From the NCBI RefSeq assembly GCF_036588685.1, contig NC_086378.1, forward strand, positions 60,078,001 to 60,142,000: a DNA stretch of 64,000 nt, given 5' to 3'. Within the stretch, counting starts at the first letter, position 1. Every line of letters begins with the position of its first letter. Source of the stretch: Mytilus trossulus (taxonomy: Eukaryota). Positions 5,601-41,900 of this stretch are shown in pieces. The notes beneath the pieces were generated by a model. The model made no database searches and was not told where the DNA came from. It worked only from the letters and a program-made list of their open reading frames with translations. The position numbers were made by a program, and so were the translations under genes.

Positions 5601-5884
5601 TGTGGACAGTTGTCTCATTGGCAATCATACCACATCTCCTTTTTATATTGTACAATGACCTATAAATGTTTTTAATTTCTGTGTCATTTGGACTCTTGTG
5701 GAGAGTTGTCTCATTGGCAATTATGCCACATCTTCTATTTCATAGTATATAGTGGGTTTTTTCAGTAGAGTCTGGTCAGTTACTAATGTTCTTGTTGTCA
5801 AAATCCATCATGAAGGACGCAACTATTGACCACTAGTCTAGCTGAGCCTAGACTGTGTTCAAGTTCTACAGGGCATGAGACGTA

Positions 5885-6304
5885 CACAGCTACTTTTGCA
5901 TAGGTACTACTTCCGTACTTAAAATATGTAGTACTGGAAATTAACTTTTAATATTTAGTACTATTTCTTTACTTTTAAATTATTGTAATATTTAGGTACT
6001 TGTATTTTACAGTACTTGATTTGTACTAAATATTTTGGTACAGAAATAATACAATATTCCATGTTTGAAAATCATAATTTTAAGAGATTTGAAATAGAAA
6101 ATCTTTCAAAATGCTAAAAATATAACGGTAGTAACCAAAAATCTGTAGTACCTAAATTTCAAGTACAAATTAAGTACTGTAAAATACAGGTACCTATATA
6201 TTACAATAATTTTAAAGTAACAAAATAGTACTGAATATCAAAAGTAAATTTCCAGTACTACATAATTTTAGTACAGAAACAGTACCTATGCAAAAGTAGC
6301 TGTG
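5885..6304. mobile_element. MITE with long terminal inverted repeats and TA target-site duplication
   Basis: TA|CACAGCTACTTTTGCATAGGTACT ... AGTACCTATGCAAAAGTAGCTGTG|TA; the arms stay imperfectly complementary for ~160 bp; rich in AGTAC/GTACT subrepeats. Confidence 0.85.
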
Positions 6305-7745
6305 TAGCTATGTCATTTTTTTGTGTGTACTCTCGAACCTCGTCGAGAGGTATGAGCCCCCCCCCCCTTTTCCCCCTATCGGTGCCAGGTCGTACATTTG
6401 TAGCACCTACTGGTAGTGGATTCGAAGAGACAAAGTCTCCTGAAGCTAACGAGTTGTCGAGAATGAAGTACCATTTCTGTCATTAAAATCTCATCAATAT
6501 CAACATACTTTAGAGTATATTTTGTTTTTCTTTTATGTTTAATTAATTCATTCAGTTGATTTGAAATATAATGGGCATTGGTTTGAGAGACAACGTCCAA
6601 ACCAGTTACTAAGAACTTTAAAATATGTTTCAAATGAGCCGTATGGTAAAGCAATCACTCGATCCGAACCCCTTGTTATGTGTAAATTTCTTTTATGTAC
6701 ATGAAATAATTATTTTTCATAGATTTCAAGGTTCATTATGAAAATTTGTAAAGGTATCCGTGGAACCCTGGTTCTCGCTTAGGATTGCTTCCTGCAAAAA
6801 TTGAATCCATTTATCAGTCCATTACATGGTCTTAAAAAAATCAAACATTTTCTTAAGATACTATTTTCTTGATCTGGAATATTCAATTCTGCATACTAAA
6901 TTTTCATGAAAATTTATGAAGGTTTACACATTTATCATGTTAAAAATAATATTTTTTGAGTGAATTATTTTCGAAAAGATCCGCATGTCAACTGAAAATT
7001 AAATGAAAAGAATAAATACTTTCGAAATTTTGCTTCAGACAGCAATCATTTATAAAATTCGATGACGATTTGACAAAGTTATTGATGTGTAACAAACTTT
7101 AACATCAGACCGTGACCCCTTTTATCAGTAAAATACGTGAAAATTAAAATGTTGATTTCATCATTATGCTCTGGATATTCATTTTGATCATAAAAATCTT
7201 CTGTTCAAAGTTTCGTAAAAGTTAATGAAGGGTCATGAAGGTTTGACATTAATAGTTATAGATATTGAAAACTGAAAAATAAGCACCCAACCTAAATTTT
7301 TACGCCACCAATTAAATCGTGATCGCTTTCGTGGCATTAATGTCGCAGGTTGGAAAAAAATGCATAAACAAATAAAATTTCAGCAGACAACAATATCATG
7401 ATCTAGATACATATTCCAAGCAGTTGTGTTTTTTGTGTCTTCTGAAAGGTTTATCATCAGCAATTTATTGAAGAGACGTGTATTATCTCCCTGCCTTTTT
7501 TTGTACATACATGCATAAAAACAAACAACAACTCTTAAACAGGTTAAATGCACCATGCACACGGCTAAATATGATAAATCAGGTCAAAACGTAAAAGATG
7601 AATGTTAAATTCAGAAATTGAGTTGTAAATGGCTTTAATTATAATTTTCAAAAAGTCTGTATTAGTATTCGATTATACCAAACGTAACACAATGTTGAAT
7701 AGATTTTACTACTTTTATTTTTCTTTTCTTTTTAGAAGCCGTTTA

Positions 7746-7878: not shown

Positions 7879-10800
7879 ATGCCTTCTCCGCCGGACAAAG
7901 GCGGTACAGGAGAAAACGAAGTGAGAAGGAGAAAGACAAGAAGCCAGAGTAAAACAGAAAACAACGATGGTCAAAGTCAGCTCAATTCCGAGGAGAGTAA
8001 TGGATCTAATCAGGAAGTAGTTCATCAAACTATAGGTAGTCCACCAGCTACATCCGAGGCGATAGAACAACAAACCCAACAACAACAATGGCAGCCACAA
8101 CCCTATTACCAGGAAGTCCTTGTTGTTCCTCCAAACAGAATTATATTTGCTATTCCAAAATGGGTTGTTTACATTGGAACAGCTGTCATTGGCATCCTAT
8201 TTGTAGCTCTTGGTGGGTTTGTCGGAGACAAAATTTACAAAACATACTTCTTACCAGGTCAAATGTTACCAAACATGACATTTTCTGCTGTTGGAGATGA
8301 AGGATGGGAATTTTTCAAGAAATATGACCGTGACGGGGATCTGAAGCTGTCTCTTGATGAATATGAAACTCTATATCATACTCTCATAGCAAGTGGTATA
8401 AATGTATGTTATTTAATATGAAATATACACAATAATAAAAAAAAAAATTAAATAGACTATGAGGCAGGCATACACCTTATCGCTATTTGTCTTCCATAAC
8501 CAATAACTCGACATCAGACATTTTCACACAGGTTCCCAAAAAAATTTGACATCATATTATGAAATATCTAACGTCAATAGTTCAAGCAGGACAGATTCTT
8601 TGGTTGGTCAAGTATAGCGTTAAGGTGTATTACCTTAGTCCAAATAACTATACATGTACATGTATATGATGTCTGGTGTCTGGAAAGGCTATTAATATTT
8701 TTTGTTGATGTAAGGCGTCAAAGAAAAATATGATAGCCTTTAAAATTTAAGTCTACATAATTATTTGGAGTTTAGTATGACGTCCATTATCACTGTCCTA
8801 GTATACATATTTTTTAATGGGCCAGCTGAAGGACGTCTACTAGTACGGGAGTTTCTCACTTAATTGAAGACCAATTGGTGGCCTTCGGCTTTTGTCTGCT
8901 CTATGGTCGGGTTGTTGTCACTTTGACACATTCCCCATTCCTTTCTCAAAAGACTCAATTTTATAATTATTTGGAATAGCATTACTTATGTCATGAAAGG
9001 GACTTATTCAGTATGAATTATTTCTTTTTAATTAAATCATATAAACTTCAAAGTCAATTAGTCCGTTTAAAAAGAAACCGAAATACCATAACTTTTCCGA
9101 TTTTGGTCCTGATGTTTTAACTGCGATGTCATTTAAGTTATAAAGTCATTTTCAATGTTAAAAAAGAAATGCTATCATCAGGTAGTGTTTTTTATCTTGG
9201 AAAAATTGTTTTAAAAATTGTTATTGTCATGATTGTTCTGGACTTCCTATATTTTATACAAGACTGATACATGTACATGAATTATTAATATATTTTACCA
9301 AAAGTCTCATGACAAACGAAACCGGGAGAAAGAAAGAGTTTTCTGCAGGCTAAAGAAACACACAACAATACACAGTAAAACTCAGTTATTATTAATTCTT
9401 AAAAGTGAAAATAGAAATAGTTGATATATAACCTCCATGTTAATTTATATATACATTTGTATAATACATGTATAATATAATAAACAAGTCTAAATTGAAA
9501 ACAACATTCAAACCTATGATTGTGTTGGATAAAAATTGCAATTTTAATACATGTGCATGTAAAACAAATTTGTTTAGAGGTCTAAATACAGCACATATAT
9601 ATGTCAAAAAAATCAAAAAAGACCAAATAAGGGAAAACAGTATCTTTTAACAAAACACATTGGATTAACAGGTCATACAACTGATGTTCTTAAACACTGC
9701 TGACTGCCATTGATGAAAACAAATTTCGTTGTAGAGGGGGCTAAATACAGCACAAATGATAGATATACACAAATCTCCATCAGAAGCAGACATTACTACA
9801 AAAAAGTAACAATTTTATTATGATTTATTTTGTAGGTAACAACTGATCTTCAGTACAAGGCAGATTATACTGTAGGTAAAGATGAGCAAACCATTACAAT
9901 GCAGGCCTACTTCCAACCTCTACTGCTGGAAACCATGAATACCAACCTCAGTGATCCAGTATGTCATTTGATACTAGAAATTTAGAAAAAAATTTTATGT
10001 TTCAGGGTTTGTCATGTTTGTAGGGATTTTAAGTACAAAAAGCCCTATTGCTACACATATACAATGTATATGTTTTTTAGCCTTGGCTATTAATCATGAT
10101 TATGGCTTGTTATTAGTCAATGATAAATACAAGTGTTTGTCATTATTCTTAATATAATAGCTGATAATCTATATATTTATATGTTATACAAGTCAGCATG
10201 TCAGTAGAAATGTATAAAAATAATCTCAAACTATTTCTGAACAAAAGCATGAAACACGGAAAAAGCTTTGAAATATGTGAAAGGTGTTATACTTATACAT
10301 CATGTACTTATGCAATATGATTGACACACGTTGTCTCACATTGTGCACATGAACTAACTCATGAAAGCAAGAGAATACCTTAACCGTTATAAATTATTTT
10401 TAATCTATAATTTTTCATGTTTAGTTTTGTCATTTATTTCAAAATAAAGAATTTTAATTATCAAAGAACATACAGAAATTATAAAAGAAGTATAATATTT
10501 TGAATACTAGTTCCAAGTAGTAATAAAATAGAGAAAGAAAATGGGGAATGTGTCAAAGGAACAACAACCCGACCATTGTTTATATGTTACATATTTGTTT
10601 TTCGTTCACTTTTTTACATAAATGAGGCCGTTTGTTTTCTTGCTTGAATTGTTTCACATTGTCTAATCGGGGCCTTTAATAGCTGACTATATGCAGTATG
10701 GGCTTTGCTCATTGTTGAAGGCCATACGGTGACCTATAATTGTTAATGTTTGTGTCATTTTGGTCTTTTGTAGATAGTTGTCTCATTTGCAATCATACAC

Positions 10801-13800
10801 CATCTTCTTTTTTATAAGTAGTGTACATTATATATTCTATCAGCATGATCAGTATATATATGAAGCATTTATATTAAGAAGGGTTAAACTAAACCTAATT
10901 TGTTTGGAGATTGTACCAAGTCAGGCTATTTAAACAATATTTGTTGTTTAACGTTTGCTGTACATCTACTTTTATTTTTGTGGTCCTTGTGAACTTATTT
11001 AACTGTTTTTAACCCCTGATATGAATTTACTGTCATGTTTTTTGTATTGTTTGTAAATTATTTCAGTTAGAACAGATTGATTCATTAAAAGGCCTTCAAG
11101 AATGGAAAACACCCAACAAAGAGACGAAAGACTTTGGAGTGACCCAGTTCAAAGGATTTCTACCTCCAAATAACTCCTTTATCGAGGAACCAGGAAAGGT
11201 TTACCAAATTTGGAACATAAATAGTACCAGCCTGCCAGACATTCCAAGTCATAGGTCCAGTAATAAATGGCTGCCTCCTAGAGTTGAGGATGAATTAGTT
11301 GTGATACACCAGCTTCTGTCCATGTTCCATCCTCGTCCATTTCTAAGGTCCAGATTTCCACCACAAGGGGGAGTGGCAAGTGTACGAGCATACAACAAGG
11401 AATATCTGGATATAAGTTTCAGGTATGTGTTTTAACAAGCTAAACAAAAAGTAATTCAAACAAGTGGATTTCAGGATGTAGATATTAAATAAACTCCTGA
11501 TCAATAAAAGAGTTGAAATGTTGTTTTTGCGCCAGACACAGGTTTTGTCTACCAAAGACTCTTCAGCGACACTTGAATAATTTTTTTTCAGTGACACTCA
11601 AATAATTTATTTTTTTTAAAAGTCAAATGAGATATGAAGTTGAGGAGTACTGAGGACCAAAAATTCCTGAAAAATATACCAAATTTATACAATAATTAAG
11701 ATAAGATTTGGAGACAAGGGCAATATTATTTTTCATTCAATTTGATTTTTCTCACCTACAAATCTAATGACAAAAATTGATTGTTATGTAATACTGCAAT
11801 GTTCATGACTTGCAAGTATTTTCTCATAAGAATTATCATGAGATGAGTTATTAAACTACTGTATTAATGTGTTAGTTAGATGTAAATTGTATATTTTTGT
11901 GCTTTAGATTACATGCTGAGTTCCAATTAAGTGAACCCCCAAACAATCCCATGTGGTTTACACCAGCACAATTTACAGGAAACCTCATCATCTCAAGGGA
12001 TTACAAGAAACTCATATACTTCCATATGTATGTCCCTACAGATAAAAAACTGAATGTGGGTGAGTACTTCAATACTATTGGCAACCTCTTAGGAAACCAA
12101 CTTTACATTTTATATTAGAAATAAGGACTTAAAACTGCATTAACTATGATATATTACATCAACATTTCATATTAAGGATTCAATCATTTTAATTGGTGGA
12201 GAGCTATCACATATTTTTCTTTAAGTTATTTTTAATTAAAATTATCAGTCAGGGGACTTACTGAAATAAGTGATTTTCTAAATCACTGATTCAAGTAACA
12301 TTATTTCCATAAAGGTTGGAAGTTAGAGTTGTCTTTCTTTAATAATCATCTATTTAAGTAGTACAAATTAATCACTAGAAGAAGTGATTTAATTTTCTTG
12401 TAGCTTTAAATGTAGAATACTAATGATCCGGGGACTAATTGTGTTTCTAAACTTACCAGAACTAACATCTGTGTTGTCTAGGATGACCAGTTCATTTCAA
12501 CTGATGACCTTGTACTGAATCTAGGATAATGACATAAAAATCACTTGTTTAAGTATCAGACCTCAATTTCCTTCCCAAAAATCACTTCTTTAAGTATCAT
12601 TCTTTTAATAACCCCCACTAATTTCAACACCCCCAAACAGTGAAATTTTCATCGCTAACAGAAGAATTTAATTACATAATCTGAAAGATGAAACCTTGAA
12701 CTTCACAGGAAAAATATTCCCACTCCTGGGAAAAATCTTTTAAGAAAGTATTAGTTCGTTATGTAAAGCCATTATTATAGCATTTTTCAATTAAAATAGA
12801 TTTTTTTAGCTAAATGGTAGGATCAAAGGCTAAACCTTGCTACTTAAAGAAGCAATCAGTTCATATTTTTTTTAATTTTGCTAATTAAATTATGATAATA
12901 TTTAAACCTATGTGTTTAAAATTTTGAAAAAACTACAAAATCCCAATTAGTGACAAAACCCCGAATTTACTACTCAAATAAGTGATTTAAAAATCACTTA
13001 TTTCAGTAAGTCCCCTGACTGATTATAATAGAATATAACATCAATATATATATATAACTACATTTGTGTATATACTCTGTATATACTGTATATTTATGTA
13101 TTGCAAGTAGTGAGACTTTAATAAAATATTGAATCTTGAATCTTGAAACAACATGACAACTATAATACAAAATAGTGTGTATCCAATTTTTTCAAGAAAA
13201 TGAACAAAAGACCTTATCTACATTGTAACTATCAATTTCCTAATTTTAGCATTATTGCTTTCATAAAAAGTAAATGCTTCCTGTTCATGGTTTTGTAGGG
13301 TTGTTAAAGCATTGATTCTAAACATGTTTTAAGAATGTTGGCCTTCCAAAATGGTTAACCAAGATTTTTATGCCCCACCTACGATAGTAGAGGGGCAGTA
13401 TGTTTTCTGGTCTGTGCCTCAGTTTGTTCGTCCGTTCGTTCGTCGGTTCGTTCGTCCCGCTTCAGGTTAAAGTTTTTGGTAGAGGTAGTTTTTGATGGAG
13501 TTGAGGTCCAATCAATTTGAAACTTAGTTCACATGTTCCCTATGATATGATCTTTCTAATTTTAATGTCAAATTAAAGTATTGACCTTAATTTCATGGTC
13601 CACTGAACAAAGAAAAAGATAGTGTGAAGCTCAGGTTAAAGTTTTTGGTCAAGGTAGTTTTTGATGAAGTTAAAGTCCAATCAACTTGAAACTTAGTACA
13701 CATGTTAACTATGATATGATCTTTCTAATTTTTAATGCCAAATTAAAGTATTGTCCCCAATTTCACGGTCCAGTGAACATGTTAAATGATAGTGCGAGTG

Positions 13801-16800
13801 GGGCATCCGTGTACTATGGACACATTCTTGTTTTATCTTTATTTCAAAGTGATTTGTCTTTTTTGACCCCTGGTACATTATTTATGATTTTCATGTTGTT
13901 CTTACTGTTTAAAATTTATTTCTGGTTTACATGTGAAATTGCAATTACTCAGTAGATATATACATAATTATTTTGTTTTTCCATTTCAGACATGGAATGG
14001 ATAAATGATATAGAGACAGCAGCTGCTATGCAGGTAGACATTGGATTCTTACCACAAATGGAGATGAATATGATTAGCACTACAACAGATTCGGAAAAGA
14101 CAGTCAAAGGAATTAAATGGACAAACGAAATACCAGAATTTGATGTTAAAAGGAAGATAGAGATCAAAATGTATCCATTTAAAGAGGTATATATAATTTT
14201 TTTACTACATCCATGTTTTAAATTGAAACCGGTAATACTATTTTTCTTCTTCTGTTCTTAACCTCTTTCAATCTTTTAGTCTTAAGTACTATACCAGTGA
14301 ACTGATTTCAGATAATCTGTAAAACATTATGACAATCTGAGGTTCTGAATTCCCTTTGAAACGTGTCATTTATGAAATAACAGTCATGTTTTTTTAAACT
14401 CCGACAGCATCAATTGGTAATTCAATGTTGGCAAATTAATTTTTACTGGTTTTGACTGTCATTTAAGACAGGTGCCACTGTTCTTTTTTATTATAAAAAA
14501 TCATTTATTTTACAATTAGCATGATTATAAAGATATTGATCATTCATGTTGATACTTTTTATCAGAAAATTTTATGGAAAAAGATTATCCATAAATATAG
14601 ATTCTTACATTGGTACCAGTGGATTATCGGATTTATCCAATCGAGATAGTTAACTATCGAGATTGGATAAATCTGATAATTCACGAGTAACTATGTAAGA
14701 ATCTGTTTCTCTAATGATTAAAACATACATTTTCTTTTTTAGTTAACCGAAAATCCCCTTCGAGCGCCTTTCACATTGCACGAAGTTGTCAATTTCATTA
14801 CCACCTGTTATAGCATATTTTGATTCATTCATGTTAGCTAAAAAGGTCATGACCCTTAAAATCACCCAATCATCTTCTGAGATCACCGGCAACCACACGT
14901 TGATTAAATTTTTTTTATACAATGGGTTCGGAAAGGGATAAATTTCCATAGAATTAGAGAAAAGAAAATATTGATTGGTTCAAAAATGTCAACATTTATC
15001 AACAGCTAAAATTTGATGATATGATTAGCTTTATATCCTAATTTTATTTTTCTATGCTTTTAGGTGCCATACTTCAACTTCACCGACTCCTTTGAAAGAG
15101 CACAAGAGGAAGACAAATTAGTGCACTCTATATTACTTTGGGGTGCACTGGATGATCAGAGTTGCTGAGGTTCTGGGCGGACACTCCGGGATACTTCCCT
15201 GGAGAGTCCGCCCGTTGTAGCTCTTCTTAAAGAGAGCTATATCAGTAACTGGGCACTTGTTGCTGATTTGCAGGTAACAATTATGAACAAAGAAAGATAA
15301 CTCCAATTTATAATATGTATTTTTATCTTGATGTCAGATTCAGTGTTCACAAGCACTCATCTTATGGTTAAAAAGTAATGTAAGTAGCATGGAAAAGATG
15401 TAAGCAAAATTTAGATATAGAAATTGTGTCACACTACAAATTCATTTACATATAGAATTTTCATATTTATATCAAAATAAACTCACAAGATACAACATGG
15501 CTTTCTTTTTCTTCTATCCGTATTTGGTATTAAATTACAGCACTGTTGGTATAATAATAAATTAAGAAATACTATTTATGATATAAAACATGATAAATAT
15601 ATTTAGAGTTATTCTGAATTTCGTATGCGTTTTCAGCTTTGTATTATATTAACTGGTGATCCATTGAATGGATCTGTCTTGTGTTGTTACTTGTTTAGAT
15701 GTACTTAATAACATAATTAATATTCATAATAATATTTATGATTTACAGGAGCTTGAAAAAGATCCTCATCAGCCAGTGTACAGTAAAACAGCCAGTCATT
15801 TCTTACAGAATTATAAATTCCCTGTTATGATGTATCTGGCTCTGAAAAATGGTACTATCGTACACAGGGTCAATGCTAATGATTTCATGCACTCACCAGA
15901 GGGTGAATATAGTGTATCAATGATGGACTCTTTTTGGCAGCTATTGTAAGTAAGATAAGAATCAAAACTTGTATATAAATATAAGAAGATGTGGTATGAG
16001 TTCCAATGAGACAACTCATGTAGTTTGCTTTTAAGTTATTTATTTATTAAAAGAAATGTTTTGAGGGGGAATTAAATGAGATGGTACCAGGGAAGTTATA
16101 TGTTTTTAACAAGTATAAGTGGTAATTAGATTTTAGCAAGTTTATAAGAATAATAAGATTTGGTATGAATGTCAATGTGACAACTATCTTCCAGTGACCA
16201 AAAGACTTGGGATTGAGCAGATATATTATTTCTTTGTGGACTTCTGAAGTCCTTACTTCATTTTTTACATTTCCAATTTTTATGGAATAGAGCTTAGGAT
16301 GGTAAGCCTTATATGACACCCTTGAAAACACATTTGCTCTCTAAGTTTTGGAGAGAGAAAAAGTTGTACTGTGGGTTCATTTATTTTCGTGGATATCAAT
16401 TTTTGTGGATTGATGAAAATTTACATTTCCGTGGATATCTGAATTTGTGGTTTGCCAATTTCTATGTACAAAGCCTATAGAAAATTTGTTATTCGTTGAA
16501 CATATGAATTCGTGGTTCACCTGTACCCAGGAAACCCACGAAAATTGGTATCCAACGAATAATAATGAATCCACAGTAATTGATATTTTAATATATTTAT
16601 TTTGAAACAGAAACTTGGAAATGTTTTTCATTGTGTGGATAAAAAGTGTTTTGTTTTCTTGATAAAAGCACAAATATTCATATACATTGTATATTGCAAT
16701 TGCTGTCACTAAAATAAAAGGAGAAAGAATAATTGATTGTTTATTATTGGTTGACAGTTCCGGAGATGAAGGGTTGATACCTACAAGGAAAGTAACAACT

Positions 16801-18844
16801 CAACGCCCAGAACTGTTCCGTGAAAAGAGGATGGAAAAAAGAGAAGAAATTCCACCGTAAGTTTAACAGTAAAAATTTTAAAGTCAAAGGGTTTTATATC
16901 TCTAATCTTTTAAAGGTTTTAGAAGTTATTGTTCAAATAGAAATATCCTATATAAAATAAAATAATTGATAATAGTTTGTGTATGTACAGCTAGATTTAA
17001 CCAGATTTTTTTTTAGCAAGATGTTAGTTTGTGATATTTGGAAAGATTAGAACTTGTTCTAAATCTTTACTTAGGCACCACCCTTCCTAACAACAGGACA
17101 GGTTAGCTACTGTTACTAAATGTATTCACACTAAAATATAGTTCCCTATAGTTCTCATGTATGTGCACATAATACACAAATAAACTGAAAAAACTGGGTA
17201 TATTATTGGAGCAGTTCATTCAAGAGTGTATGTCATTAATGTGTGTTGATGTGCAGGCTTTTTTTAAAAACATTTTGATTAGGTAAGTGGGTATTGATTC
17301 AACTAGTATGATTGACAACTGTCATTATCACTAAACAATCAGAGACAAGGTGGACTTTTAATTACAATGCCCCACCCCCTAAACTGCCAATCAAATTGAC
17401 CACATTACCTATCTACATCAGTCTTACATAATTGTACAGACCACTCCAATATGCATCTAATTCTTAATACACAAGTATTTGACCTCATAATTGATTACAC
17501 AAATGTGTGTATTATTTGTTTGATATTTATAAGGATGATAGATTTATTTATTGCCAATTACTTTTGATCTACATTACATAAAGTAGTTCTGTAAATTATA
17601 TCTGAAAGATAAATGATTAATGGATTAGCAAGATCTTAAACAAATGAAATATGAATATAAATATGAATATATAAAAGGTATTCAAGTATGGCCTATAATT
17701 TACTTGATAAATTTCCAATAATCATCTGTAATTAATCAACAATTTAGATTAGTTCACTTTTTTATCAGGAATTGGCTTGAAACAGTTTTAAAATTTATAA
17801 ACTTTTAATTATAAACATGATAAAAAAAACCATTGTTAATTAGTTAATATTTCCCATCCATCATTATGCCTATTTTAGTCATTTGAATTTTTATTAGAAG
17901 TAAATATATGTTTTTGCAATCAAGAAAGAATCCACATTTCAATAACATTAGTTTTTTAATTAGTTTACTTTAAAAAATAAAATGGAAAATGCCCTGTGTT
18001 GAAAAATACATTAAAATTTGATCAAAAGGCACTCTAAAACTTTTAATTTTCAATGCCATATAACCTCTGTTTTTACCTACAAAATGCCCCAAAACAACAT
18101 TTTTAGATTATTTTTGTTGGCACTTAAAAGCTTTTAGCTGTTGGTCTAAATTTATGTCTTACAAGGATATTTGGTAACATTTACTAGAAGAATTTTTGCA
18201 TTTTTTTGTTTTTTTGAAACATGTTCAGAACCGGCAACATAATTTCAATTAGATATAAACTACAGTTTAAATAAAATTGTGCAAATTTAGAGACCCATAT
18301 TATTTAATTTGAGCTCATTTATCCTCATACTGGAAAAGCAAGTTTCCTTCTAAAGACCTGCTGTAAATGCAATTTTCAGCAATAGTGTTTTATAAATGTT
18401 CATTTTTCCCCACCATACCTTAATATGAAATAATTCAAACTACTGTTCTAATCTTTCCATGAGTTATATCCATCACTTTGATTATACAGAGAGCTTTAAA
18501 CAAGACAGTAGTTTTTGAATGCTTTTAAGATGAGAAATTGTGAAATATTTAATACAATGCGGTTTAAAGATATTAAGACAGAATGGTACTACAAAATGAA
18601 CATAAGAAAACTCATTCAGTGGTGGATTCTATGGGAATGGCTTAGAGGGCCTACATATTTTTGGATCATCATCCTCATGTTTACCCATTAAAATCCACAA
18701 ATTTTTGTACGAACAAATAAAAATGAATGCATTGAAAATATTTTTTAAATACTTTTCTTGTATATTTTCAGGGAACATACAAATGAAGAGAAATATTTAC
18801 AATTTTTAAAGGAGGGTGTGAGAAGAGCCCAAAATTATTTGTAA
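7879..18844 (+). CDS. SELENON: Selenoprotein N (ER membrane EF-hand/thioredoxin-like selenoprotein), 9 coding exons, ~643 aa, Sec at about residue 486
   Basis: Exons 7879-8403, 9836-9958, 11067-11422, 11908-12059, 13990-14186, 15064-15273, 15749-15945, 16758-16856, 18772-18844; all GT-AG and phase-compatible. N-terminal TM helix ([21 protein letters not shown]), EF-hand ([13 protein letters not shown]), and SELENON motifs [110 protein letters not shown]. Confidence 0.96.
12246..13021. mobile_element. Non-autonomous DNA transposon (MITE) in SELENON intron 4
   Basis: ~30-bp perfect TIR CAGTCAGGGGACTTACTGAAATAAGTGATT / AATCACTTATTTCAGTAAGTCCCCTGACTG; ATTAT on both flanks; internal AATCACT subrepeats. 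Confidence 0.85.
13365..13834 (+). mobile_element. Helentron-associated (HINE/DINE-1/pearl-like) non-autonomous element with an internal tandem repeat
   Basis: 5' TTTTTATGCCCCAC sub-terminal IR matched by GTGGGGCAT near 13798, a (GTTC/GTCC)n microsatellite at ~13425-13458, two ~169-bp units (TCAGGTTAAAGTTTTTGGT at 13462 and 13631), and a 3' hairpin GTGTac-tat-gGACAC followed by a T-run. Confidence 0.75.
14599..14704. repeat. ~106-bp imperfect palindrome, probably the core of a Crypton-like non-autonomous element
   Basis: AGATTCTTACAT...ATTATCGGATTTATCCAATC gA GATAGTTAACTATC gA GATTGGATAAATCTGATAAT...ATGTAAGAATCT. Confidence 0.7.
15064..15273 (+). CDS. SELENON: SELENON exon 6 containing the in-frame selenocysteine UGA (15166-15168)
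   Basis: tttag|GTG CCA TAC ... CAG AGT TGC TGA GGT TCT GGG CGG ... TTG CAG|gtaaca; 210 nt, phase 0-0; conserved protein sequence continues on both sides of the TGA. Missing from the ORF track. Confidence 0.95.
15175..15213 (+). promoter_or_regulatory. Selenocysteine redefinition element (SRE) stem-loop in the SELENON coding sequence
   Basis: Starts 6 nt after the UGA: GGGCGGAC-A-CTCC-GGGA-(TACT)-TCCC-T-GGAG-A-GTCCGCCC; 8+4+4 Watson-Crick pairs, 27/39 GC in an AT-rich gene; same position as the SRE described for vertebrate SEPN1. Confidence 0.88.
16369..16576. mobile_element. Tc1/mariner-type MITE in SELENON intron 7
   Basis: TA|CTGTGGGTTCATTTATTTTCGT ... ACGAATAATAATGAATCCACAG|TA with TCGTGG/CCACGA subrepeats. 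Confidence 0.75.
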
Positions 18845-20630
18845 CCATGACAAGCCATAGATAGAGATACGCTGTGATAATCATGTGCTGAGGAATAAAA
18901 CCTTGCAATAACCATACATTCCATACATTCCAAGCCTTCATTTACATTCCATGCAATTATCACGATTTTAGTCAGAATTTGTGTTGAATATTAGTTTTAT
19001 ACTAGCTAAATATAATTTACAAATTTAGAGAAAAGTTTCATTGGGCATCAGAAGATAACTATTTTTCTAGTGTTATAAAATTAACTTATATGCGTTAATT
19101 ATGAATCTCTTGGAATATTTTCAATGGCTAAACTAGATTTTTCATTTTTTTAATTGATGCAATACTTACTCAATTTGAAATTTATAAGTGTTTAAGTTTG
19201 TAATTTGAAAAAAAAAAAAAAAAATACAATTTTTCATGTACAGTATCAATATCAAATATCCTCTGTCTGTTTGCATTTTTAATAATAAATTTTTAATCAT
19301 GTTTATGATTTTCATGAAAAGGTGATGAAAAATTATGCATACAGGTTTTTGATTGTGAAATCCTATTTGAACCATTTGTGATATTTAATTGTTAGAGATG
19401 TAAATATTTTATTGGCTATTTATAAATGTTAATGATTCTATTTTTGGAGTCGATCATTCAAAATCATTTATTTTTTATACATTCTAACATTGTATTATTA
19501 TATATTTTGTCATTTATACCTTTTAGGTATAGGAGAAATTTTCTTGATGTATGATTTTGTTACATGAATGTGTTTGATGTTTTTATAATAGAAAGAGTGT
19601 GTGTGCAGTTTTAAACCTTGTTTTAACATTAGTTTTTTTTTTTAATTTTTTGGTGTTTGAAAGTGTGCTTGGGGTTAATATGGTTTGTCAAATATCATGG
19701 TAATTACTGCTAGCCCCTTTGATGTATAATATTTTTATACTCTTTATCGCTATTTTGTCCAATCTGGAATAGAAATAGTTACCATAAAAAAAAGAAGATG
19801 TTATATGATTACAAATGAGACAACTGTCCACAAAAGACCAAATTGACACAGACATTAACAACTATAGGTCAACCATGTCAACTTCCTAATTGGGTCAAGT
19901 GTCACAAAAAACAAAGGTCATCATTAATGAGCTGAAGGAGGTAAAAGTTTAGAAGTAAAAATTTTGTGGATTTGATAGTTTGTCAAAACTTTTTGAACTC
20001 AAATAAGATTCAAACAATTCTTTATTGAATTGCTTACTATGGTTGGAACATGACTCTATGAAAATTTCTATGCACAATATATTGTTTGAATAGGGTGCCA
20101 GATAGCTTCTACTGCATTGTGAAATAGTTGTGTAATTTCAGTATTTATTCGGATCGAAATAAATAAAAATAAGTTTTTTTTAATATTACCACAAATATTT
20201 GTGTGCCTTAAGAATTATTTTAGTTTTTTTTATCGTTCTATTAAAATTTATCTAGATTAGCTTATCAAAATGTAGTTAAATTATTTTTTTTTTGAAAGAA
20301 ACATTTTCTGATTAATTTTGAATGAAATGGATTATTATTGCTAGTAACAGCCTAACATTTTGATTTAGGTTAGTTTGCAAGTAAATTTCTATTTTTAGGA
20401 GTTGAGACTTAAACTTAGAGAAATTTTTGCAATATATCTGAAAAAATATAATACTGTCATAATTGCTCAAAAAACTTCACAATCATTTATTGTCAATCAA
20501 ATTTACTCGATTTTTTTACATATCATCAAATTAATTTGTATCTGCTTTTTGTTTTTATACTAACATTTTATTTATGCTGTTTTAATTATTATTCTCAGTT
20601 GGTTCATCTTCATGTGTAGTTTTGTGTATA

Positions 20631-20705
20631 AATATTATACATGTAATGAAGGTCACATGTTAAAGTAGGTCACTACCTAATGGGACTTGATGTAATGTGT
20701 GTATT
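20631..20705 (+). promoter_or_regulatory. SECIS element (form 2) in the SELENON 3'UTR
   Basis: AUGA 20646-20649, 12 nt, AAA 20662-20664, apical mini-stem GUAG(GUCA)CUAC, UGAU 20688-20691; helix II GGUCACAU/AUGGGACU; helix I AUACAU/AUGUGU extended by AAUA/UAUU; AATAAA follows at 20753-20758. Confidence 0.9.
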
Positions 20706-20752
20706 TTTACATTTAACTAAATTTGTCGATGAATTTTCTGTAACAGTAGTAT

Positions 20753-20758
20753 AATAAA
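20753..20758 (+). terminator. Probable SELENON polyadenylation signal
   Basis: First AATAAA downstream of the SECIS, followed by a T/GT-rich tract; a second lies at 20854-20859. Confidence 0.55.
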
Positions 20759-23383
20759 CAATATGTTTTAAGATTATATTTTGTTTTTATTTTAATGCCA
20801 AAATACTTTACATGTAATAATGAATTAATTAAAATGTGAATATATTTCAACAAAATAAATATAGATTACATCTACAGGTCACCACAGGGTCTTCAAAATT
20901 TGCTGTGTGATACTAGCCTGTCGAGCTCTTAATTGCCATGATGCAGAGCCATAGCACCTTTTGATTATAATTGACAATTTGCGGACTTTATGTGACTCTA
21001 GTATGTCAAACTCTAAAATGTCTTGGTGTGGAAATGTAGTTCTATAAAAATTTCTTTTAAATATTTTCTTACAATTTGTTGACTATGGTTAGCAAATTGT
21101 AGGGTATAACAAATACCATATGGACTTAAGAGCTATTGTTTAGCAGTTATACATGGCCCTAGGTGTAGAAAGGACTGTTGTTTGAAAAAATTCCACCCAC
21201 TCCAAATTTCCAAAATGACATAACAATTAAGAATAATATAATAAAAGAAAACATTTGAGTATGTTCCTTTTTTTAAGACGGACACATGCAATAGTGGCAT
21301 AATTTAACTAACATCAATTAAGATGCAACATTTTCTAATAGATATAAGAAGATGTAGTACATGTGGTATGAGTGCTAATGAGAAAACTCTCCATCTAAGT
21401 CTTCTTTATCCAGATTCTGTAAATACTAAGTATAGATTTTATTAAAAGGGCAAAATGTGAGATAATCATAATTTTGTTAAAATAATTGATAATCCATAAA
21501 CTAAAAACAAATGTTGAAAGGCTTGAGAAGTCTGAAATGGAAAAATATATACATACAAAGCTATGAAATCAAGCATGTGATTTGGGAATATTGATCATAA
21601 TGGAAATAAGAAGATCTAGTTGTGGTATGCGTGCCAATGAGACAACTCTCAATTTAAGTCATGATGTGTAAGAAGTAAACAATTATAGGTCAAAGTGTAG
21701 CCTTGGCTCATATCAAACAACAAGCCATATATGCCCGCCCAGGAGCCTACAATGACAAGTGTTAAACAGAAAAAAAAACGATCTAATCTATTTATAAAAC
21801 TAGAAACGAGAAACGGCAACAACTGAAGAACAGGCTCCTGGGATAGGACAGGTGCAAGCAAATGCAGTGGGCGAAACATTTTTAACAGGAGCCAACCTTC
21901 ATGCTAACCCGAAACAGTAGTACAATATAAACGGGCACAGTTTAAAATATCAATTGAAATTAATGAACTCGATCAAAAATGCATATTATAGTCACACGAG
22001 GAAGTATGTCCACTTTGCTCATATGCCAATGCAGCAGTCATAATGTATCATCAATCATGAAAACGTATTAGTTGGTGACAAAATAATGGCTTTGGGATAT
22101 TAAAGATGTTAGATAAAATCTGATTGAATTACTGTTCAGTGGAAAGTATCACATGCATATTTAGGAAAAGAATACATTTTGATTTATAATAACAGTTCTA
22201 TCCTTTTGAGTAATCGGTAAACAATATGCCGGTTTTTATGTTTTCCTGTAATTTGAAAAAATACAGGTGTAAAAAAAAAATGAATGTTTTTTACACATTA
22301 TGACTCGAATGGTCAGTTGTCTCATTGGCACTCATACTAAATTTTAGTTCAATGTAAATCCTTCTATACTACACAGGAACATTGCCTTTTTATGTTCTGC
22401 TTTGATCTGAGTGAGTCAGAGCTTAGATTCATATTTCAGATCGTCTGTCTTTTATACTCGTAATCTTGCTGCAATTGAATTTTGATAACTCTCTCAGATG
22501 TCAGATCAATGTATTGACAACTTTAAAAGAATTTGTCAGCTTTCTTTAATATCTAGTATGTGTTGGCGTTGAATATATAGTCTTCTTATATCTCAGTAAC
22601 GTCAGCCACAAAGATATGCGGCAACTATATATATTTAAACGGAACTACAAACAACTGTCATAGGGATAACCTAGCATTTTCGTCGGAAAAATGTCTATAT
22701 AATTAATAATATTTGGTTGATAATGCTTGATTTTGTCAGTTTTGACGAACGTCCTGTTTTGAGTATACCTTGGAATTCGTTATTTTTGTTTTTCATTTTT
22801 ACATAGATGTAATAAACAATTCTTTTATTTTATTCCTAAAAGACAATTTGTTTTGCAGGAATATTTACACTTTTATGATATGATTTGGAAGACATCTTTG
22901 TCTTCTAATTTGATGTAAAAAATTACTTGATGCCTTGTATGGCAACTTGGATCGTTGTTTTTTGTTATCTTTTTTTTCTGGTTTAAATGTCACAAAACCA
23001 GAACAGTTTGGTGATACATAATATCACTTCTCTGTTATTTACATTATTATTGTAATACTTGACCTCTAAATATTTTGTCAAATTTTGAATGTTTTTTTTT
23101 CTTGTGAACATACACCCCACACATTTTTTGTATTTATATTGTAAATAATAATTGATAGCATTTTTTACACGTGTTTAAAAAACATACGTTTTGTGTCAAC
23201 TTGGAGGATAGAATTTCTTTTTACACAATAGTTTACCGATCCCTATGAAAACAGAAATCATTCGTGCTATACTAATTGTACTTATATCCTGAACCTGTCT
23301 GTCCTTTTTAAGATGTTTTCTTTTTACATGTTTAATTATACGAAAATGTCAGGGTTTGATAAAATATAAACAATACAAAATAA

Positions 23384-23502: not shown

Positions 23503-26500
23503 ATGGAGTTCTTATGTGTATTTGTCAATCTGATTGTATTGGCTTCCACACAAACTGTAAATCCTGGTCTTAGATTAAGAATAACTCAAGATGGATTACA
23601 TTACGGTGAGTGCATTAAATCGAGACGGTTAGTATAGTTTTTAATCATGATGATTCATTGCATAAGTTTGATTTTGGGAATCGAGTGAAATAACGGGGGA
23701 AAAGTCATGTGGCACCTTCGAAAGTATCAGTTTTTTTCAAAGTGGCCTGATTTTTTAAAATTATTATCAAATAAAGCAATTCCATTCTTTAACAAAGCAT
23801 AAATTTCAAATAAGAAATCATTAACTCTCAAGTTGAAAAAAAGGAACATGGCTTTAAATATGTCGCTGTCTCTTCTATCAGTCTGGCGTTCAATAATTTC
23901 AAAGACAAACCAAAGAGCACCAAGAGAATCGTTATGTGTAGCTAAATGATGTTACTGGTGACAGTGCTATCTCTTACTCTAGCAATTAAAACTAGACCAG
24001 CCTTGGATGTTCCTCCTTTTGATGCATTCTTTGATACATTATTGAATAAGGTCTACCGTTGACTATTCGACCTTTTACAAATCAATCTTTTAACCTCCCT
24101 TAAATATATACTAAGATCCAAGAAAAGATCACCAATTATAATTTTAATAAGTGTAATCAGAAGTTAAGGGCGAGTTGTATATGTGTTACTCTTTGATGCA
24201 AAAAAGGTCGCCGTAATATAATCGACCTTTTCCATTTTTCGAAGTCAATTTATCTAAAACGAACTAAATGTATAAATTTCACAGAGAAAATAGAATTGTA
24301 AATCAACTAAATATAAATAATGTTTGATACGAATAATTTCAAGACAATAGAAGGAAGGAAATTTGATTTCTCGATGACCTTGACTTTTATTAAAATATAT
24401 CATAAATAGCGGAAATATTTATATTATAAATGAATTTGCATATGGATGTTTCCAAATGAAAAAAAAATGCCAAATGAAAATTGAAACTTCAAGGAAATTA
24501 CAATAGCAAAAAAGTTTAATATCATTTTCAAAAGTATAATCAAGTTAGACAAAACAGAGATATATAATATACTTGTATTATATGCCTCTGGACAAAAGTA
24601 ACAAAAAACGGAAAGTGAAACATGAAAGAAAGGAAACATTCAACCGAAAGTGTTTACGTAAGATGTAAAAGGTCTAGTTTACACCAAAACAGGAAAGTAA
24701 AAAATAATAATAATTGGAATACAATGGACAGAATAGCGAGCGGATTATATTGATGATTTACTGTTATTTATTTAATTAACGAAACGGTAAAACTGTTCAA
24801 TTGGTTCGCAAATATATATGCTTAACAACCATTTTCAATTCTTATGCATACACCTTTTTTTGTTGATTCGCATTCCTTTTTCATTGATAAGCATGTGCTA
24901 ACTATTTGTTTTTAATTGGAATTAAATAATGCCAAACACTATCGATTATCAATGATTCGCATATGCCGATTCTTTTTATTCATACCCATTTATATATACC
25001 AAACAATCTTTTGTATTGATTCGCATACGCCACACACTTGATATTTTTCATTGATTCGCATACGCCACACACTTGGTATTTTATTGAAAATGTTTTTTTT
25101 TATTGAATCGCATATGCCACACCCTTTTTTTTTGTTGTTATTATTGATTCGCATACCCACACACACATATATTGTTTTTTTTTATTCGCATACGCCAAAC
25201 AGTCAATTTGATGTTGATTTGCCTTTATATATTGTACTAACTGTTGTTGTCAAGCATACGAGCTTCCAAATTTCAATGTCAGCTGACCTCCATCAGTAAC
25301 AAAAAAAGTAATAGATATTCAGAAATACAATAAGTTGAAGTCCTATTTCTTACGCAAGTAATAAAAGGCATTATACAGTTATTTGTTTGGAAAAAAAAAT
25401 GGAAAACTGGCCTGCAGACAAATACATGCGTTTCCCTTGCCTATCAAACTTATCAAAACCCGATTCAGATAGTCATAATGGTAAAAATGATAGTAAAGTA
25501 ATTATAATAAGCAATTGTTTTGTTTTTAGCGAATAAGGTGGCTGTAGATACTTTTGCTAAAGATATAAAGCGCACAAGACTAGAAGATATCACTGGAAAC
25601 GTAAAAGGCGTCCAATACAGTCTTACCAAGTATGTCAACTCTAATAACAATAATTTGATTGTTAAAAAAATCACGTTAACAACAAAGATATACACATCTA
25701 GAGTAGTTCATACTTCTTCTTACTGCTTTTTGTACGAATATAATTGTCCCGACTCCTTTATTTACTTTTTGAAATCAGATATTGATAATACTTTTTTTTT
25801 AAAGATATATATTTGCCTAATGAGTATATAATTCAAAACCCAACTGAAACTAAATAGACATTATGTTGTAAAACATTAATATCTAGAGGTCAACTTACAA
25901 AAAACAGCTAGACAGGCAATTTGCCAAGAAAAGAAAAGTTGTGAATACACACAAAATGGACTATCGAAGACCTATGAACATTAAAAACATTTTATCAAGA
26001 AAAACTAAGACACTGTGACAAATAAAGACAAGTAGCGAGGTTCCTACATGTATCTAGGGACGAACCGATGGCTGTATTCAAATACATAAATTGAACACTC
26101 AAATCAATCAATTCCGTATTATATCAGTGGATTAAATTTTAAAATGTACATTTTGCACCTGTCCTAAGTCAGGAATCTGATGTACAGTAGTTGTCGGTTG
26201 TTGATGTAATATATACGTGTTTCTCGTTTCTCGTTTTGTTTATATAGATTAGACCGTTGGTTTTCCCGTTTGAATGGTTTTACACTAGTAATTTTGGGGC
26301 CCTTTATAGCTTGTTGTACGGTGTGAGCCAAGGCTCCGTGTTGAAGGTCGTACTTTAACTTATAGTGGTTTACTTTTTAAATTGTTACTTGGATGCAGAG
26401 TTGTCTCATTGGCACTTACACCACATCTTCCTATATATATGAACACATGAGAACGAAAAAAAAATATTCAGTACCCTAATAAATTGAATTTAAGTACAGA

Positions 26501-38913: not shown

Positions 38914-41900
38914 ATGTGGCTTTTCGTCTCTGTACATGTATTGTGTGTTTTATTTTCTACTATTCTGGCCACAAATCCAGGATTCAGATTACGAATAACA
39001 GAAGATGGACTTAACTACGGTATGTTTAATTATTTGTATTAAATGACACAAGTATGTCAACAGTCAAACTGTAAGTAATTGCGATCTTATAACATTATCT
39101 GTGTATGCCGAAAGAAGGTGTCATACATCTGTATGTCACAAAATTTAAAAGAAGCGGAAATAAACAATCTCAAACAGTTGAGTGACCACTTTTGCTGACT
39201 TGATTGTTCCTACTTCTAATTAGAACTTGATGCAATATTGGTAATTTTATTCATTTTCTAACACCAACACGTTGTGATTGGCAATATGGCTGTCAATACC
39301 CAAAACAACTGAAATCCAACAAACGAGTTTAAATCAGCTTAGTATAAGCTTGCCCTTAAAAATAATGTATTAGTATTCTATTTCAGCGAAATGAACACCA
39401 CACTAAACTCCGAAACAAATGAATAAACTAATTTAAAAAAAAAACGCAAAAGACTCACAAAGGTTTGAGGTTCCTGATTTTGGCGCAAAAGAGCTTGGGG
39501 TATAAACTCAAGCGTTGTAGATTTGTTTTTTTACATTTTCAGCGTTTGGCTTTACATCTACAGCGCTAGAAATTATCTTCGTATTGCCCTTCAAACTCAC
39601 AAATCTTTATCTATATGATACCAACTACGGGGCGCCGAATGGGACTCTTGTGATTTTGTACTCAAAATTCAATTTTGTACGGACAAAAGTGACTTTTGTT
39701 CAACAAAAATGAGTTCAGTTTAACAAAATTTGTATCATACTACAAATTTGAAATTTTGTCATACAAAATTATCTATCAGCGGACAAAAGTCACTTTTGTC
39801 ATGACAAAATTCATTTTTGTTACACAGACTTGACTTTTGTTACCTAATTTGAAAATTGAGCGACAAAAGTCAATTTTGTATTTAAATTAGTTTAGTTCGG
39901 TTTCTGTGAACTAATTTGCATACAAAATCGACTTTTGTTACACAAAATTGACTTTTGTTACACAAAAATTACTTTTGTTACACAAAATTGACTTTTGTTA
40001 CACAAAATTGACTTTTGTTACACAAAATTGACTTTTGTTACACAAAATTGACTTTTGTTACACAAAATTGACTTTTGTGAGACAAAATTGACAAAATTGA
40101 CTTTTGTCTCAACAAAATTGACAAAATTGACTTTTGTCTCAACAAAATTGACAAAATTGAATTTTGTCTCAACAAAATTGACAAAATTGAATTTTGTCTC
40201 AACAAAATTAACAAAATTGAATTTTGTCTCAACAAAATTAACAAAATTGAATTTTGTCTCAACAAAATTAACAAAATTGAATTTTGTCTCAACAAAATTG
40301 ATTTTTGTCTCACGAAAGTCAATTTTGTCTCACGAAAGTCAATTTTGTCTCACGAAAGTCAATTTTGTCTCATAAAAGTCAATTTTGTTGTTACAAAATT
40401 GAATTTTGTCATCACAAAAATGAATTTTGTCGTCACAAAATTGACTTTTGTCTCAACAAAATTGACAAAATTGACTTTTGTCTCAACAAAATTGACAAAA
40501 TTGACTTTTGTCTCAACAAAATTAACAAAATTGACTTTTGTCTCAACAAAATTGACAAAATTGACTTTTGTCTCAACAAAATTAACAAAATTGACTTTTG
40601 TCTCAACAAAAATGACAAAATTGAATTTTGTCTCAACAAAAATGACAAAATTGAATTTTGTCTCAACAAAAATGACAAAATTGAATTTTGTCTCACAAAA
40701 GTCAATTTTGTCTCACAAAAGTCAATTTTGTCTCACAAAAGTCAATTTTGTCTCACAAAAGTCAATTTTGTCTCACAAAAGTCAATTTTGTCTCACAAAA
40801 GTCAATTTTGTCTCACAAAAGTCAATTTTGTCTCACAAAAGTTAATTTTGTTTCACAAAAGTCAATTTTGTCTCACAAAATTGAATCTTACCGTACACAA
40901 TTGACTTTTGTGATTTAATTTCCATATCAGGTAACAAAAGTCAATTTTGTATGCAAATATGTTTATATTTGCATACCTTTAAGACAAAATTGACTTTTGT
41001 CATGACAAATATGAATTTTGTCTACAAAAATGAATTTTGTCATGACAAAAATGAATTTTGTCTACACAAATGAATTTTGTCATCACAAAATTGAAGTTCT
41101 CACAAAAAAAAGTCTGTAGCACATAGTTTTGTAAGACAAAAATGATTTTGTTATGACAGAATTGAATTTTGTACAAAACCACAAGAGTCCCATTCGGCGC
41201 CCCGTACCAACAGGCCTTCGTAACATTCAGATATACCCAAACAGTTGTATCAACGGATACAATATAAGTATCTGATATTGCACAAATTAAATCCAACAAA
41301 CCAATTTTGTTCATAAAAAATAAGCATGATAAGTTGGTTGAATTCAATTGAATATTTTAGCCAATCAAGTAGCAGTAGATTTAGTTACAAAGAAAGTAAA
41401 GACAACTAAATTACCGGATCAAAGTGGAGATGGAAAAAATGTTAAATATTCTCTTACCAAGTGAGTCAAAGTTATATTTAGCAGAATTATTTAAAAGTGT
41501 CAAATATGATAAGTGACACGCAGAACAGTTTATTTTTATATTTTTTAAATATATCCTTAGCAAAGGACTTGGTTTTACTTTATCAAGTACCTTAAGATTG
41601 GATGGTAGGTTATCAAAGTTATCGCCTTCACAGATAATCATATACACTTCCTACAAAATCTTGGACAAACATTCCTGAAGATGTGTCAATGCAATATAAA
41701 GGAGAAATCAAAATTAATAAACACCAAGTTCTCTTCCGCTACGAGAGATGGAATTTTAAATATCTTTTTTTTTCAAGCCAAAATCAGTATTTATAATTTG
41801 TTTTATATAACAAAGAAAACAAACCTTACGAGAAAGGCAACTTCACATGTACAAATATATAGACTTAATACATGTGCATACATTAAACGTGTTATAATGC

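Follow-up and report, generated by a model that had tools for sequence, protein, structure and literature searches.

In a window of 64,000 nucleotides from the Mytilus trossulus genome (contig NC_086378.1, here called C6, positions 60078001–60142000; all positions without a contig name are counted from the first letter of this window), the forward-strand stretch 7879–20780 is very probably a working gene for selenoprotein N (SELENON), the UGA of which at 15166–15168 is translated as selenocysteine (Sec). [quoted passage not shown] The mRNA would be read through the UGA to give a 643-residue membrane protein of the endoplasmic reticulum whose redox centre is SCUG. If vertebrate SELENON is taken as the model, the SECIS at 20636–20703 in the 3' untranslated region (UTR) may bind SBP2, and SBP2 could then bring eEFSec, loaded with Sec-tRNA(Ser)Sec, to a ribosome that has paused at the UGA. 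Another hairpin, the selenocysteine redefinition element (SRE), is part of the coding sequence (CDS) and lies 6 nt downstream of the UGA. With the UGA in the A site it would be placed at the mRNA entrance, where it could disfavour termination and raise Sec insertion. This is a standard SELENON gene with standard two-element recoding, and no new mechanism is involved.

The in-frame TGA and the SELENON family

The gene model was constructed by aligning database homologues to the window with tblastn and reading the splice sites, exon by exon. It consists of nine coding exons at 7879–18844 on the forward strand, in which every intron is of the GT-AG type and the phases are consistent (0/0/2/1/0/0/2/2 in order, by arithmetic over each exon), and the CDS totals 1932 nt, corresponding to 643 codons and a stop. 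Codon 486, a TGA within DDQSC-TGA-GSGR at 15151–15180, is the sole internal stop. An initial annotation, made from the sequence of the window, had described the frame of the TGA-bearing exon as open on both sides of the TGA, and this holds; the exon, in phase 0, is flanked by AG on the acceptor side and GT on the donor side. Its numbering as exon 6 is correct once the small exon at 9836–9958 is counted. The absence of this exon from the list of open reading frames (ORFs), which had been pointed out in the same annotation, was also found: no forward-strand ORF of at least 40 amino acids covers the exon in that list, because the TGA splits it into pieces of 34 and 35 codons.

The gene is, to judge from its homologues, SELENON. 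A word-index search returned only five unnamed fragments, and a large representative protein search was therefore used with exon 3 as the query, which yielded 147 relatives, 52 of them with E ≤ 1e-10. Relatives from Mactra antiquata, Canis, Cercocebus, Eptatretus and Sarcophilus are named selenoprotein N by their sources, and others carry the names selenoprotein N-like (Octopus vulgaris), SEPN1 (Sepia pharaonis) and SELENON (Branchiostoma lanceolatum). Exon by exon, tblastn matches were obtained with entries from Mactra, Potamilus, Octopus, amphioxus, hagfish and mammals. The best named matches agree with the probable molluscan origin suggested in the initial annotation. No Pfam family matches exons 2–9, there being no Pfam model for SELENON, and a query of the ESM Atlas with exon 3 gave no usable match. 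The initial assignment to SELENON is thus borne out by exon-by-exon named homologues and by the position of the TGA at the Sec site of the family, together with the covariation of the SRE and the SECIS described below.

A scan of metagenome contigs with the degenerate pattern WGxLDDQSC-TGA-G returned 60 loci, and each proved to be a SELENON exon carrying this in-frame TGA in an identical Sec context. At least 11 of the 60 are cDNA-like, with 418–480 open codons before the TGA and 118–134 after it, and three loci, with a mammal-like protein context and an intron directly after TGA-G, were set aside as vertebrate-looking, although none was considered human. Within the genome itself, the same TGA recurs in a second copy of the gene on C6 and in a divergent paralogue on contig C3. 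This recurrence makes an error of assembly or sequencing at a cysteine codon (TGC or TGT) very unlikely, and such an error is barely credible, given that exon 6 of the second C6 copy differs by one base from that of the window and nevertheless retains the TGA.

The way in which the relatives have been annotated bears on a further alternative, namely that the TGA is a true stop, so that the locus would be a pseudogene or encode a truncated protein of 485 residues with relics of exons downstream. Among 54 database relatives that contain the DDQSC motif, 49 end exactly at the cysteine before the UGA, including entries from Octopus, Branchiostoma and dog (named selenoprotein N, SELENON or SEPN1) and an unnamed one from Potamilus; three others skip the residues "UG", one is mis-spliced, and none of the 54 shows Sec (U). 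An entry from Mactra, itself called selenoprotein N, lacks 16 residues around the Sec site. These endings, taken at face value, would agree with termination at the TGA, although they reflect the behaviour of gene callers; the omission of the Sec residue in annotation has already been documented for vertebrates (PMC12822975). Protein homology, in contrast, spans both sides of the TGA and continues for about 157 codons without another stop, and the TGA is the same in 60 loci of diverse animals, which makes a true stop highly improbable. The expectation expressed at the outset, that automated annotation would truncate or mis-splice the gene, agrees with what has happened to the relatives.

The hairpin behind the TGA

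A strong hairpin 6 nt after the TGA had also been proposed initially, and folding bears it out. The minimum free energy of the fold is −35.5 kcal/mol (z −3.86), none of 200 shuffled sequences folds as well, and the spacer between the TGA and the stem is GGUUCU. Covariation was scored on an ungapped alignment of 31 distinct metagenome SELENON sequences whose exon runs past the TGA, with a stem of 13 pairs formed by columns 10–22 with columns 36–48. The stem is paired in 85.9% of the cells, as against 27–48% with the partners slid by 1–3 columns. Compensatory changes, in which both partners differ, occur in nine of the 13 pairs, and the covariation score is reached by none of 500 shuffles. Some of these compensations alter the protein. 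In four loci, GGG CGG AC/GU CCG CCC is replaced by GCC CGC AC/GU GCG GGC, by which Gly...Pro-Pro becomes Ala...Ala-Gly. Compensatory covariation in a hairpin directly behind the TGA also speaks against the TGA as a true stop.

The gene of the window, like many other invertebrate loci, has the UGA and the entire SRE within a single exon. In contrast, an intron stands directly after TGA-G in eleven coral-like loci and in the three vertebrate-like ones, and the SRE hairpin of these loci therefore exists only in spliced mRNA.

For human SELENON, the stem, loop and spacer of the SRE have been established, as has the influence of the element on Sec insertion; stimulation of UGA redefinition is known for the human SRE only. 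UGA, SRE and SECIS together form the textbook architecture of SELENON (PMC8704476; PMC6844570; PMC1440920). Sec-form SelN with a SECIS was reported in 2012 for the mollusc Lottia gigantea by Jiang et al., whose SECIS-based selenoprotein search also reports it for an annelid, a cnidarian, a sponge and amphioxus (PMC3473315), and SELENON orthologues in "some invertebrates" are mentioned in a review (PMC12839072). The full two-element recoding architecture, which had been singled out initially as the outstanding feature of the locus, is thus not novel. The gene of the window and SelN of Lottia are both Sec-forms; the covariation of the SRE across many invertebrate sequences is described here, whereas the SRE is not mentioned in the consulted passages of the 2012 paper. 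Among related elements, the coding hairpin of SELENOT and other SRE-type elements likewise form a conserved stem-loop less than 10 nt after the Sec UGA in the CDS (PMC1440920), although the SELENOT hairpin belongs to another protein family and has another sequence. The bacterial SECIS, bound by SelB, is similar in that a hairpin stands directly after the UGA within the ORF. However, the bacterial hairpin recruits SelB by itself, whereas the downstream hairpin here would be accessory to the required signal, the SECIS of the 3'UTR, as in eukaryotes.

The predicted SECIS and the Sec machinery

In eukaryotes, a SECIS in the 3'UTR is the established required signal for Sec insertion. The candidate in the window, a type II element, was placed by the initial annotation about 1.8 kb past the true stop, and its ATGA indeed lies 1802 nt after the TAA at 18842–18844. 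It has all the canonical features, namely an AUGA/GA quartet (U.U/G.A/A.G/A-U), 12 nt from the AUGA to the AAA, a 5-bp apical mini-stem and a 9-bp helix I, and an AATAAA follows 50 nt downstream. Its distance from the stop and this AATAAA are in keeping with a place in the 3'UTR of the mRNA that contains the UGA. The Rfam model SECIS_1 (RF00031) matches 20636–20703 over its full 64 positions with 21.6 bits and ranked first (E 0.032) when 141 nt were scanned with all 4227 Rfam families. A second covariance model (R1) was built from four SECIS elements behind SELENON ORFs in contigs of other animals and contains no sequence of this genome. With filters off over the 2.4-kb 3' region, it placed 20632–20704 first (22.2 bits, E about 0.001), the next match scoring 14.3 bits.

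The gene could, with a small probability, be a real selenoprotein gene in which 20636–20703 is not the working SECIS, because of an earlier poly(A) site, a spliced 3'UTR or the use of another element. A simple SECIS pattern is compatible with this possibility in that it gave 8 matches on both strands of the 64-kb window against 3.8 in shuffles, so that about four would arise by chance. Since the pattern alone is unspecific, the element is supported instead by where it lies, by its strand and by two covariance models: 20636–20703 is the sole forward-strand pattern match downstream of the gene, it is the top match of both independent models, and R1 finds no better candidate within 18845–21200.

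Several points weigh against the reading of the locus as a working selenoprotein gene with this SECIS, and some of them would equally favour a SECIS located elsewhere. The score of 21.6 bits is below the Rfam gathering threshold of 35, and an Rfam scan over 6.7 kb gave no match at E ≤ 1. R1 with default filters over 102 kb missed the element of the window, although the same run found the SECIS of the C3 paralogue (18.5 bits, E 0.31), and the assignment of the predicted element is for this reason good but not airtight. Three AATAAA motifs, at 18894, 19284 and 20158, lie between the stop and the SECIS, so that some transcripts could end without it. Exon 8 and the acceptor of exon 2 were placed by splice logic and homology, respectively, and the function of the SRE in this gene is a presumed one, transferred from human SELENON. 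Finally, we infer transcription of the locus, the extent of its 3'UTR and the actual insertion of Sec. When the 3'UTRs of the two C6 copies were compared along their length, their identity showed no special conservation at the SECIS.

Two tRNA-Sec genes with the anticodon TCA (79.6 and 77 bits) are present in the genome, and contig C4 carries the exons of a SepSecS gene in collinear order. The presence of this machinery, together with the SECIS, is a further argument against the TGA as a true stop. At C10:63843916–63855579 and C10:64461689–64492367, long tandem arrays whose units repeat every 890–900 bp or so match the tRNA-Sec model with 45.9 bits; these are ordinary tRNA gene arrays, not tRNA-Sec, because a neighbouring unit reads as tRNA-Ser(GCT) and tRNA-Cys(GCA).

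Gene model and further SELENON copies

The features of the gene are collected in Table 1. Exon 1 encodes an N-terminus of low complexity, a hydrophobic stretch predicted to span the membrane (residues 97–115, with a Kyte-Doolittle mean of 2.29 over 19 residues) and a putative EF-hand-like loop, the Pfam EF-hand models matching residues 143–166 weakly (E 0.011–0.025, under the curated cut-offs). Exon 8 has no counterpart in the compared homologues or in the C3 paralogue, and it is 100% conserved in the second C6 copy.

Table 1. Features of the SELENON gene, in window coordinates
Feature	Position	Strand	Basis and remarks
Coding exon 1	7879..8403	+	ATG at 7879, GT donor; tblastn of homologues
Coding exon 2	9836..9958	+	41 codons, phase 0; AG/GT sites, open frame; 30 homologues match 9854-9952; acceptor picked by homology
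Coding exon 3	11067..11422	+	Query of the homology searches; boundaries from tblastn and splice sites
Coding exon 4	11908..12059	+	tblastn of homologues and splice sites
Coding exon 5	13990..14186	+	tblastn of homologues and splice sites
Coding exon 6 (Sec codon and SRE)	15064..15273	+	AG acceptor, GT donor, phase 0
In-frame TGA, predicted Sec codon (486 of 643, SCUG motif)	15166..15168	+	Sequence; same TGA in the other copies and in metagenome loci
SRE hairpin	15175..15213	+	Fold of 76 nt around the TGA; covariation
Coding exon 7	15749..15945	+	tblastn of homologues and splice sites
Coding exon 8	16758..16856	+	33 codons; open frame, AG/GT sites, fitting phases
Coding exon 9	18772..18844	+	Conserved ...YLQFLKEG... 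tail; TAA stop at 18842-18844
3'UTR (presumed extent)	18845..20780	+	AATAAA signals at 18894, 19284, 20158 and 20753
Type II SECIS (predicted)	20636..20703	+	AUGA 20646-20649, AAA 20662-20664, GA 20689-20690, apical mini-stem
AATAAA, likely poly(A) signal	20753..20758	+	3' of the SECIS; sequence alone

Orthologous to vertebrate SELENON/SEPN1 of human, mouse and zebrafish, the gene shares with it SCUG with a UGA-encoded Sec and an SRE a few nucleotides after the UGA (PMC12839072; PMC8704476; PMC6844570; PMC1440920); the N-terminal membrane span, the EF-hand-like loop and the 3'UTR SECIS of the vertebrate gene have predicted counterparts here. On the other hand, its coding exons number nine, whereas human SELENON has 13, and with the additional 33-codon exon 8 and the long N-terminal low-complexity stretch it reaches 643 residues, compared with about 550–590 in vertebrates.

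The second copy of the gene is situated at C6:49396214–49426693, 10.7 Mb upstream, and is collinear with at least positions 1–30000 of the window at 91–99% identity. Its nine exons are intact and the TGA is kept; the SRE shows one synonymous difference (at window position 15187), and the SECIS is identical at 106 of 106 nt. This copy may be either a haplotig that the assembly has placed in series or a segmental duplication of recent date. It lacks a 1.45-kb repeat that occupies 17034–18487 in intron 8 of the window gene and occurs in dozens of copies of 91–97% identity on many contigs; the repeat resembles a recently active mobile element because of these many similar copies and its absence from the second C6 gene. 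Copies of a short repeat of about 90 nt in the 3'UTR (19781–19871) are found in either orientation, within one of the introns of the gene (about 10576–10816) and elsewhere in the genome. Further high-copy repeats in the window are found at 5883–6306, 26152–26440 and 39623–41000, among them a 425-bp element whose two strands match one another at about 80%, as those of a miniature inverted-repeat transposable element might, a 290-bp element present at 96–97% identity in many contigs, and a repeat of at least 1.4 kb.

The divergent paralogue at C3:31730900–31743870 shows 34–72% amino acid identity per exon, and in exon 3 the C6 and C3 paralogues are as distant from each other as from the SELENONs of other molluscs. 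It possesses a separate in-frame TGA, an SRE of its own (−33.7 kcal/mol, z −4.35) and a candidate SECIS (locus L073:5298–5366) about 3.6 kb after the C-terminus, which scores 28.3 bits with SECIS_1, likewise below the gathering threshold; its C-terminal part is a single exon.

The value of these results lies mainly in annotation, in that they provide a correct 643-codon model with Sec486 for a kind of gene often cut short or mis-spliced by standard pipelines. The alignment of 31 SELENON SRE sequences from invertebrates and others, with its clear covariation, is a useful confirmation of the SRE as ancient in animals, and the paralogue and the duplicate offer material for the study of how recoding signals survive gene duplication. 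A broader proposal, for which we see about even chances, is that two old and divergent SELENON paralogues, on C6 and C3, have both kept UGA, SRE and SECIS, with a further near-identical copy of the C6 gene, and that the pairing of the SRE has been kept across animals through compensations that change amino acids, Gly/Ala codons being paired with Pro/Gly codons. If this were true, RNA structure would steer the protein sequence beside the active site.

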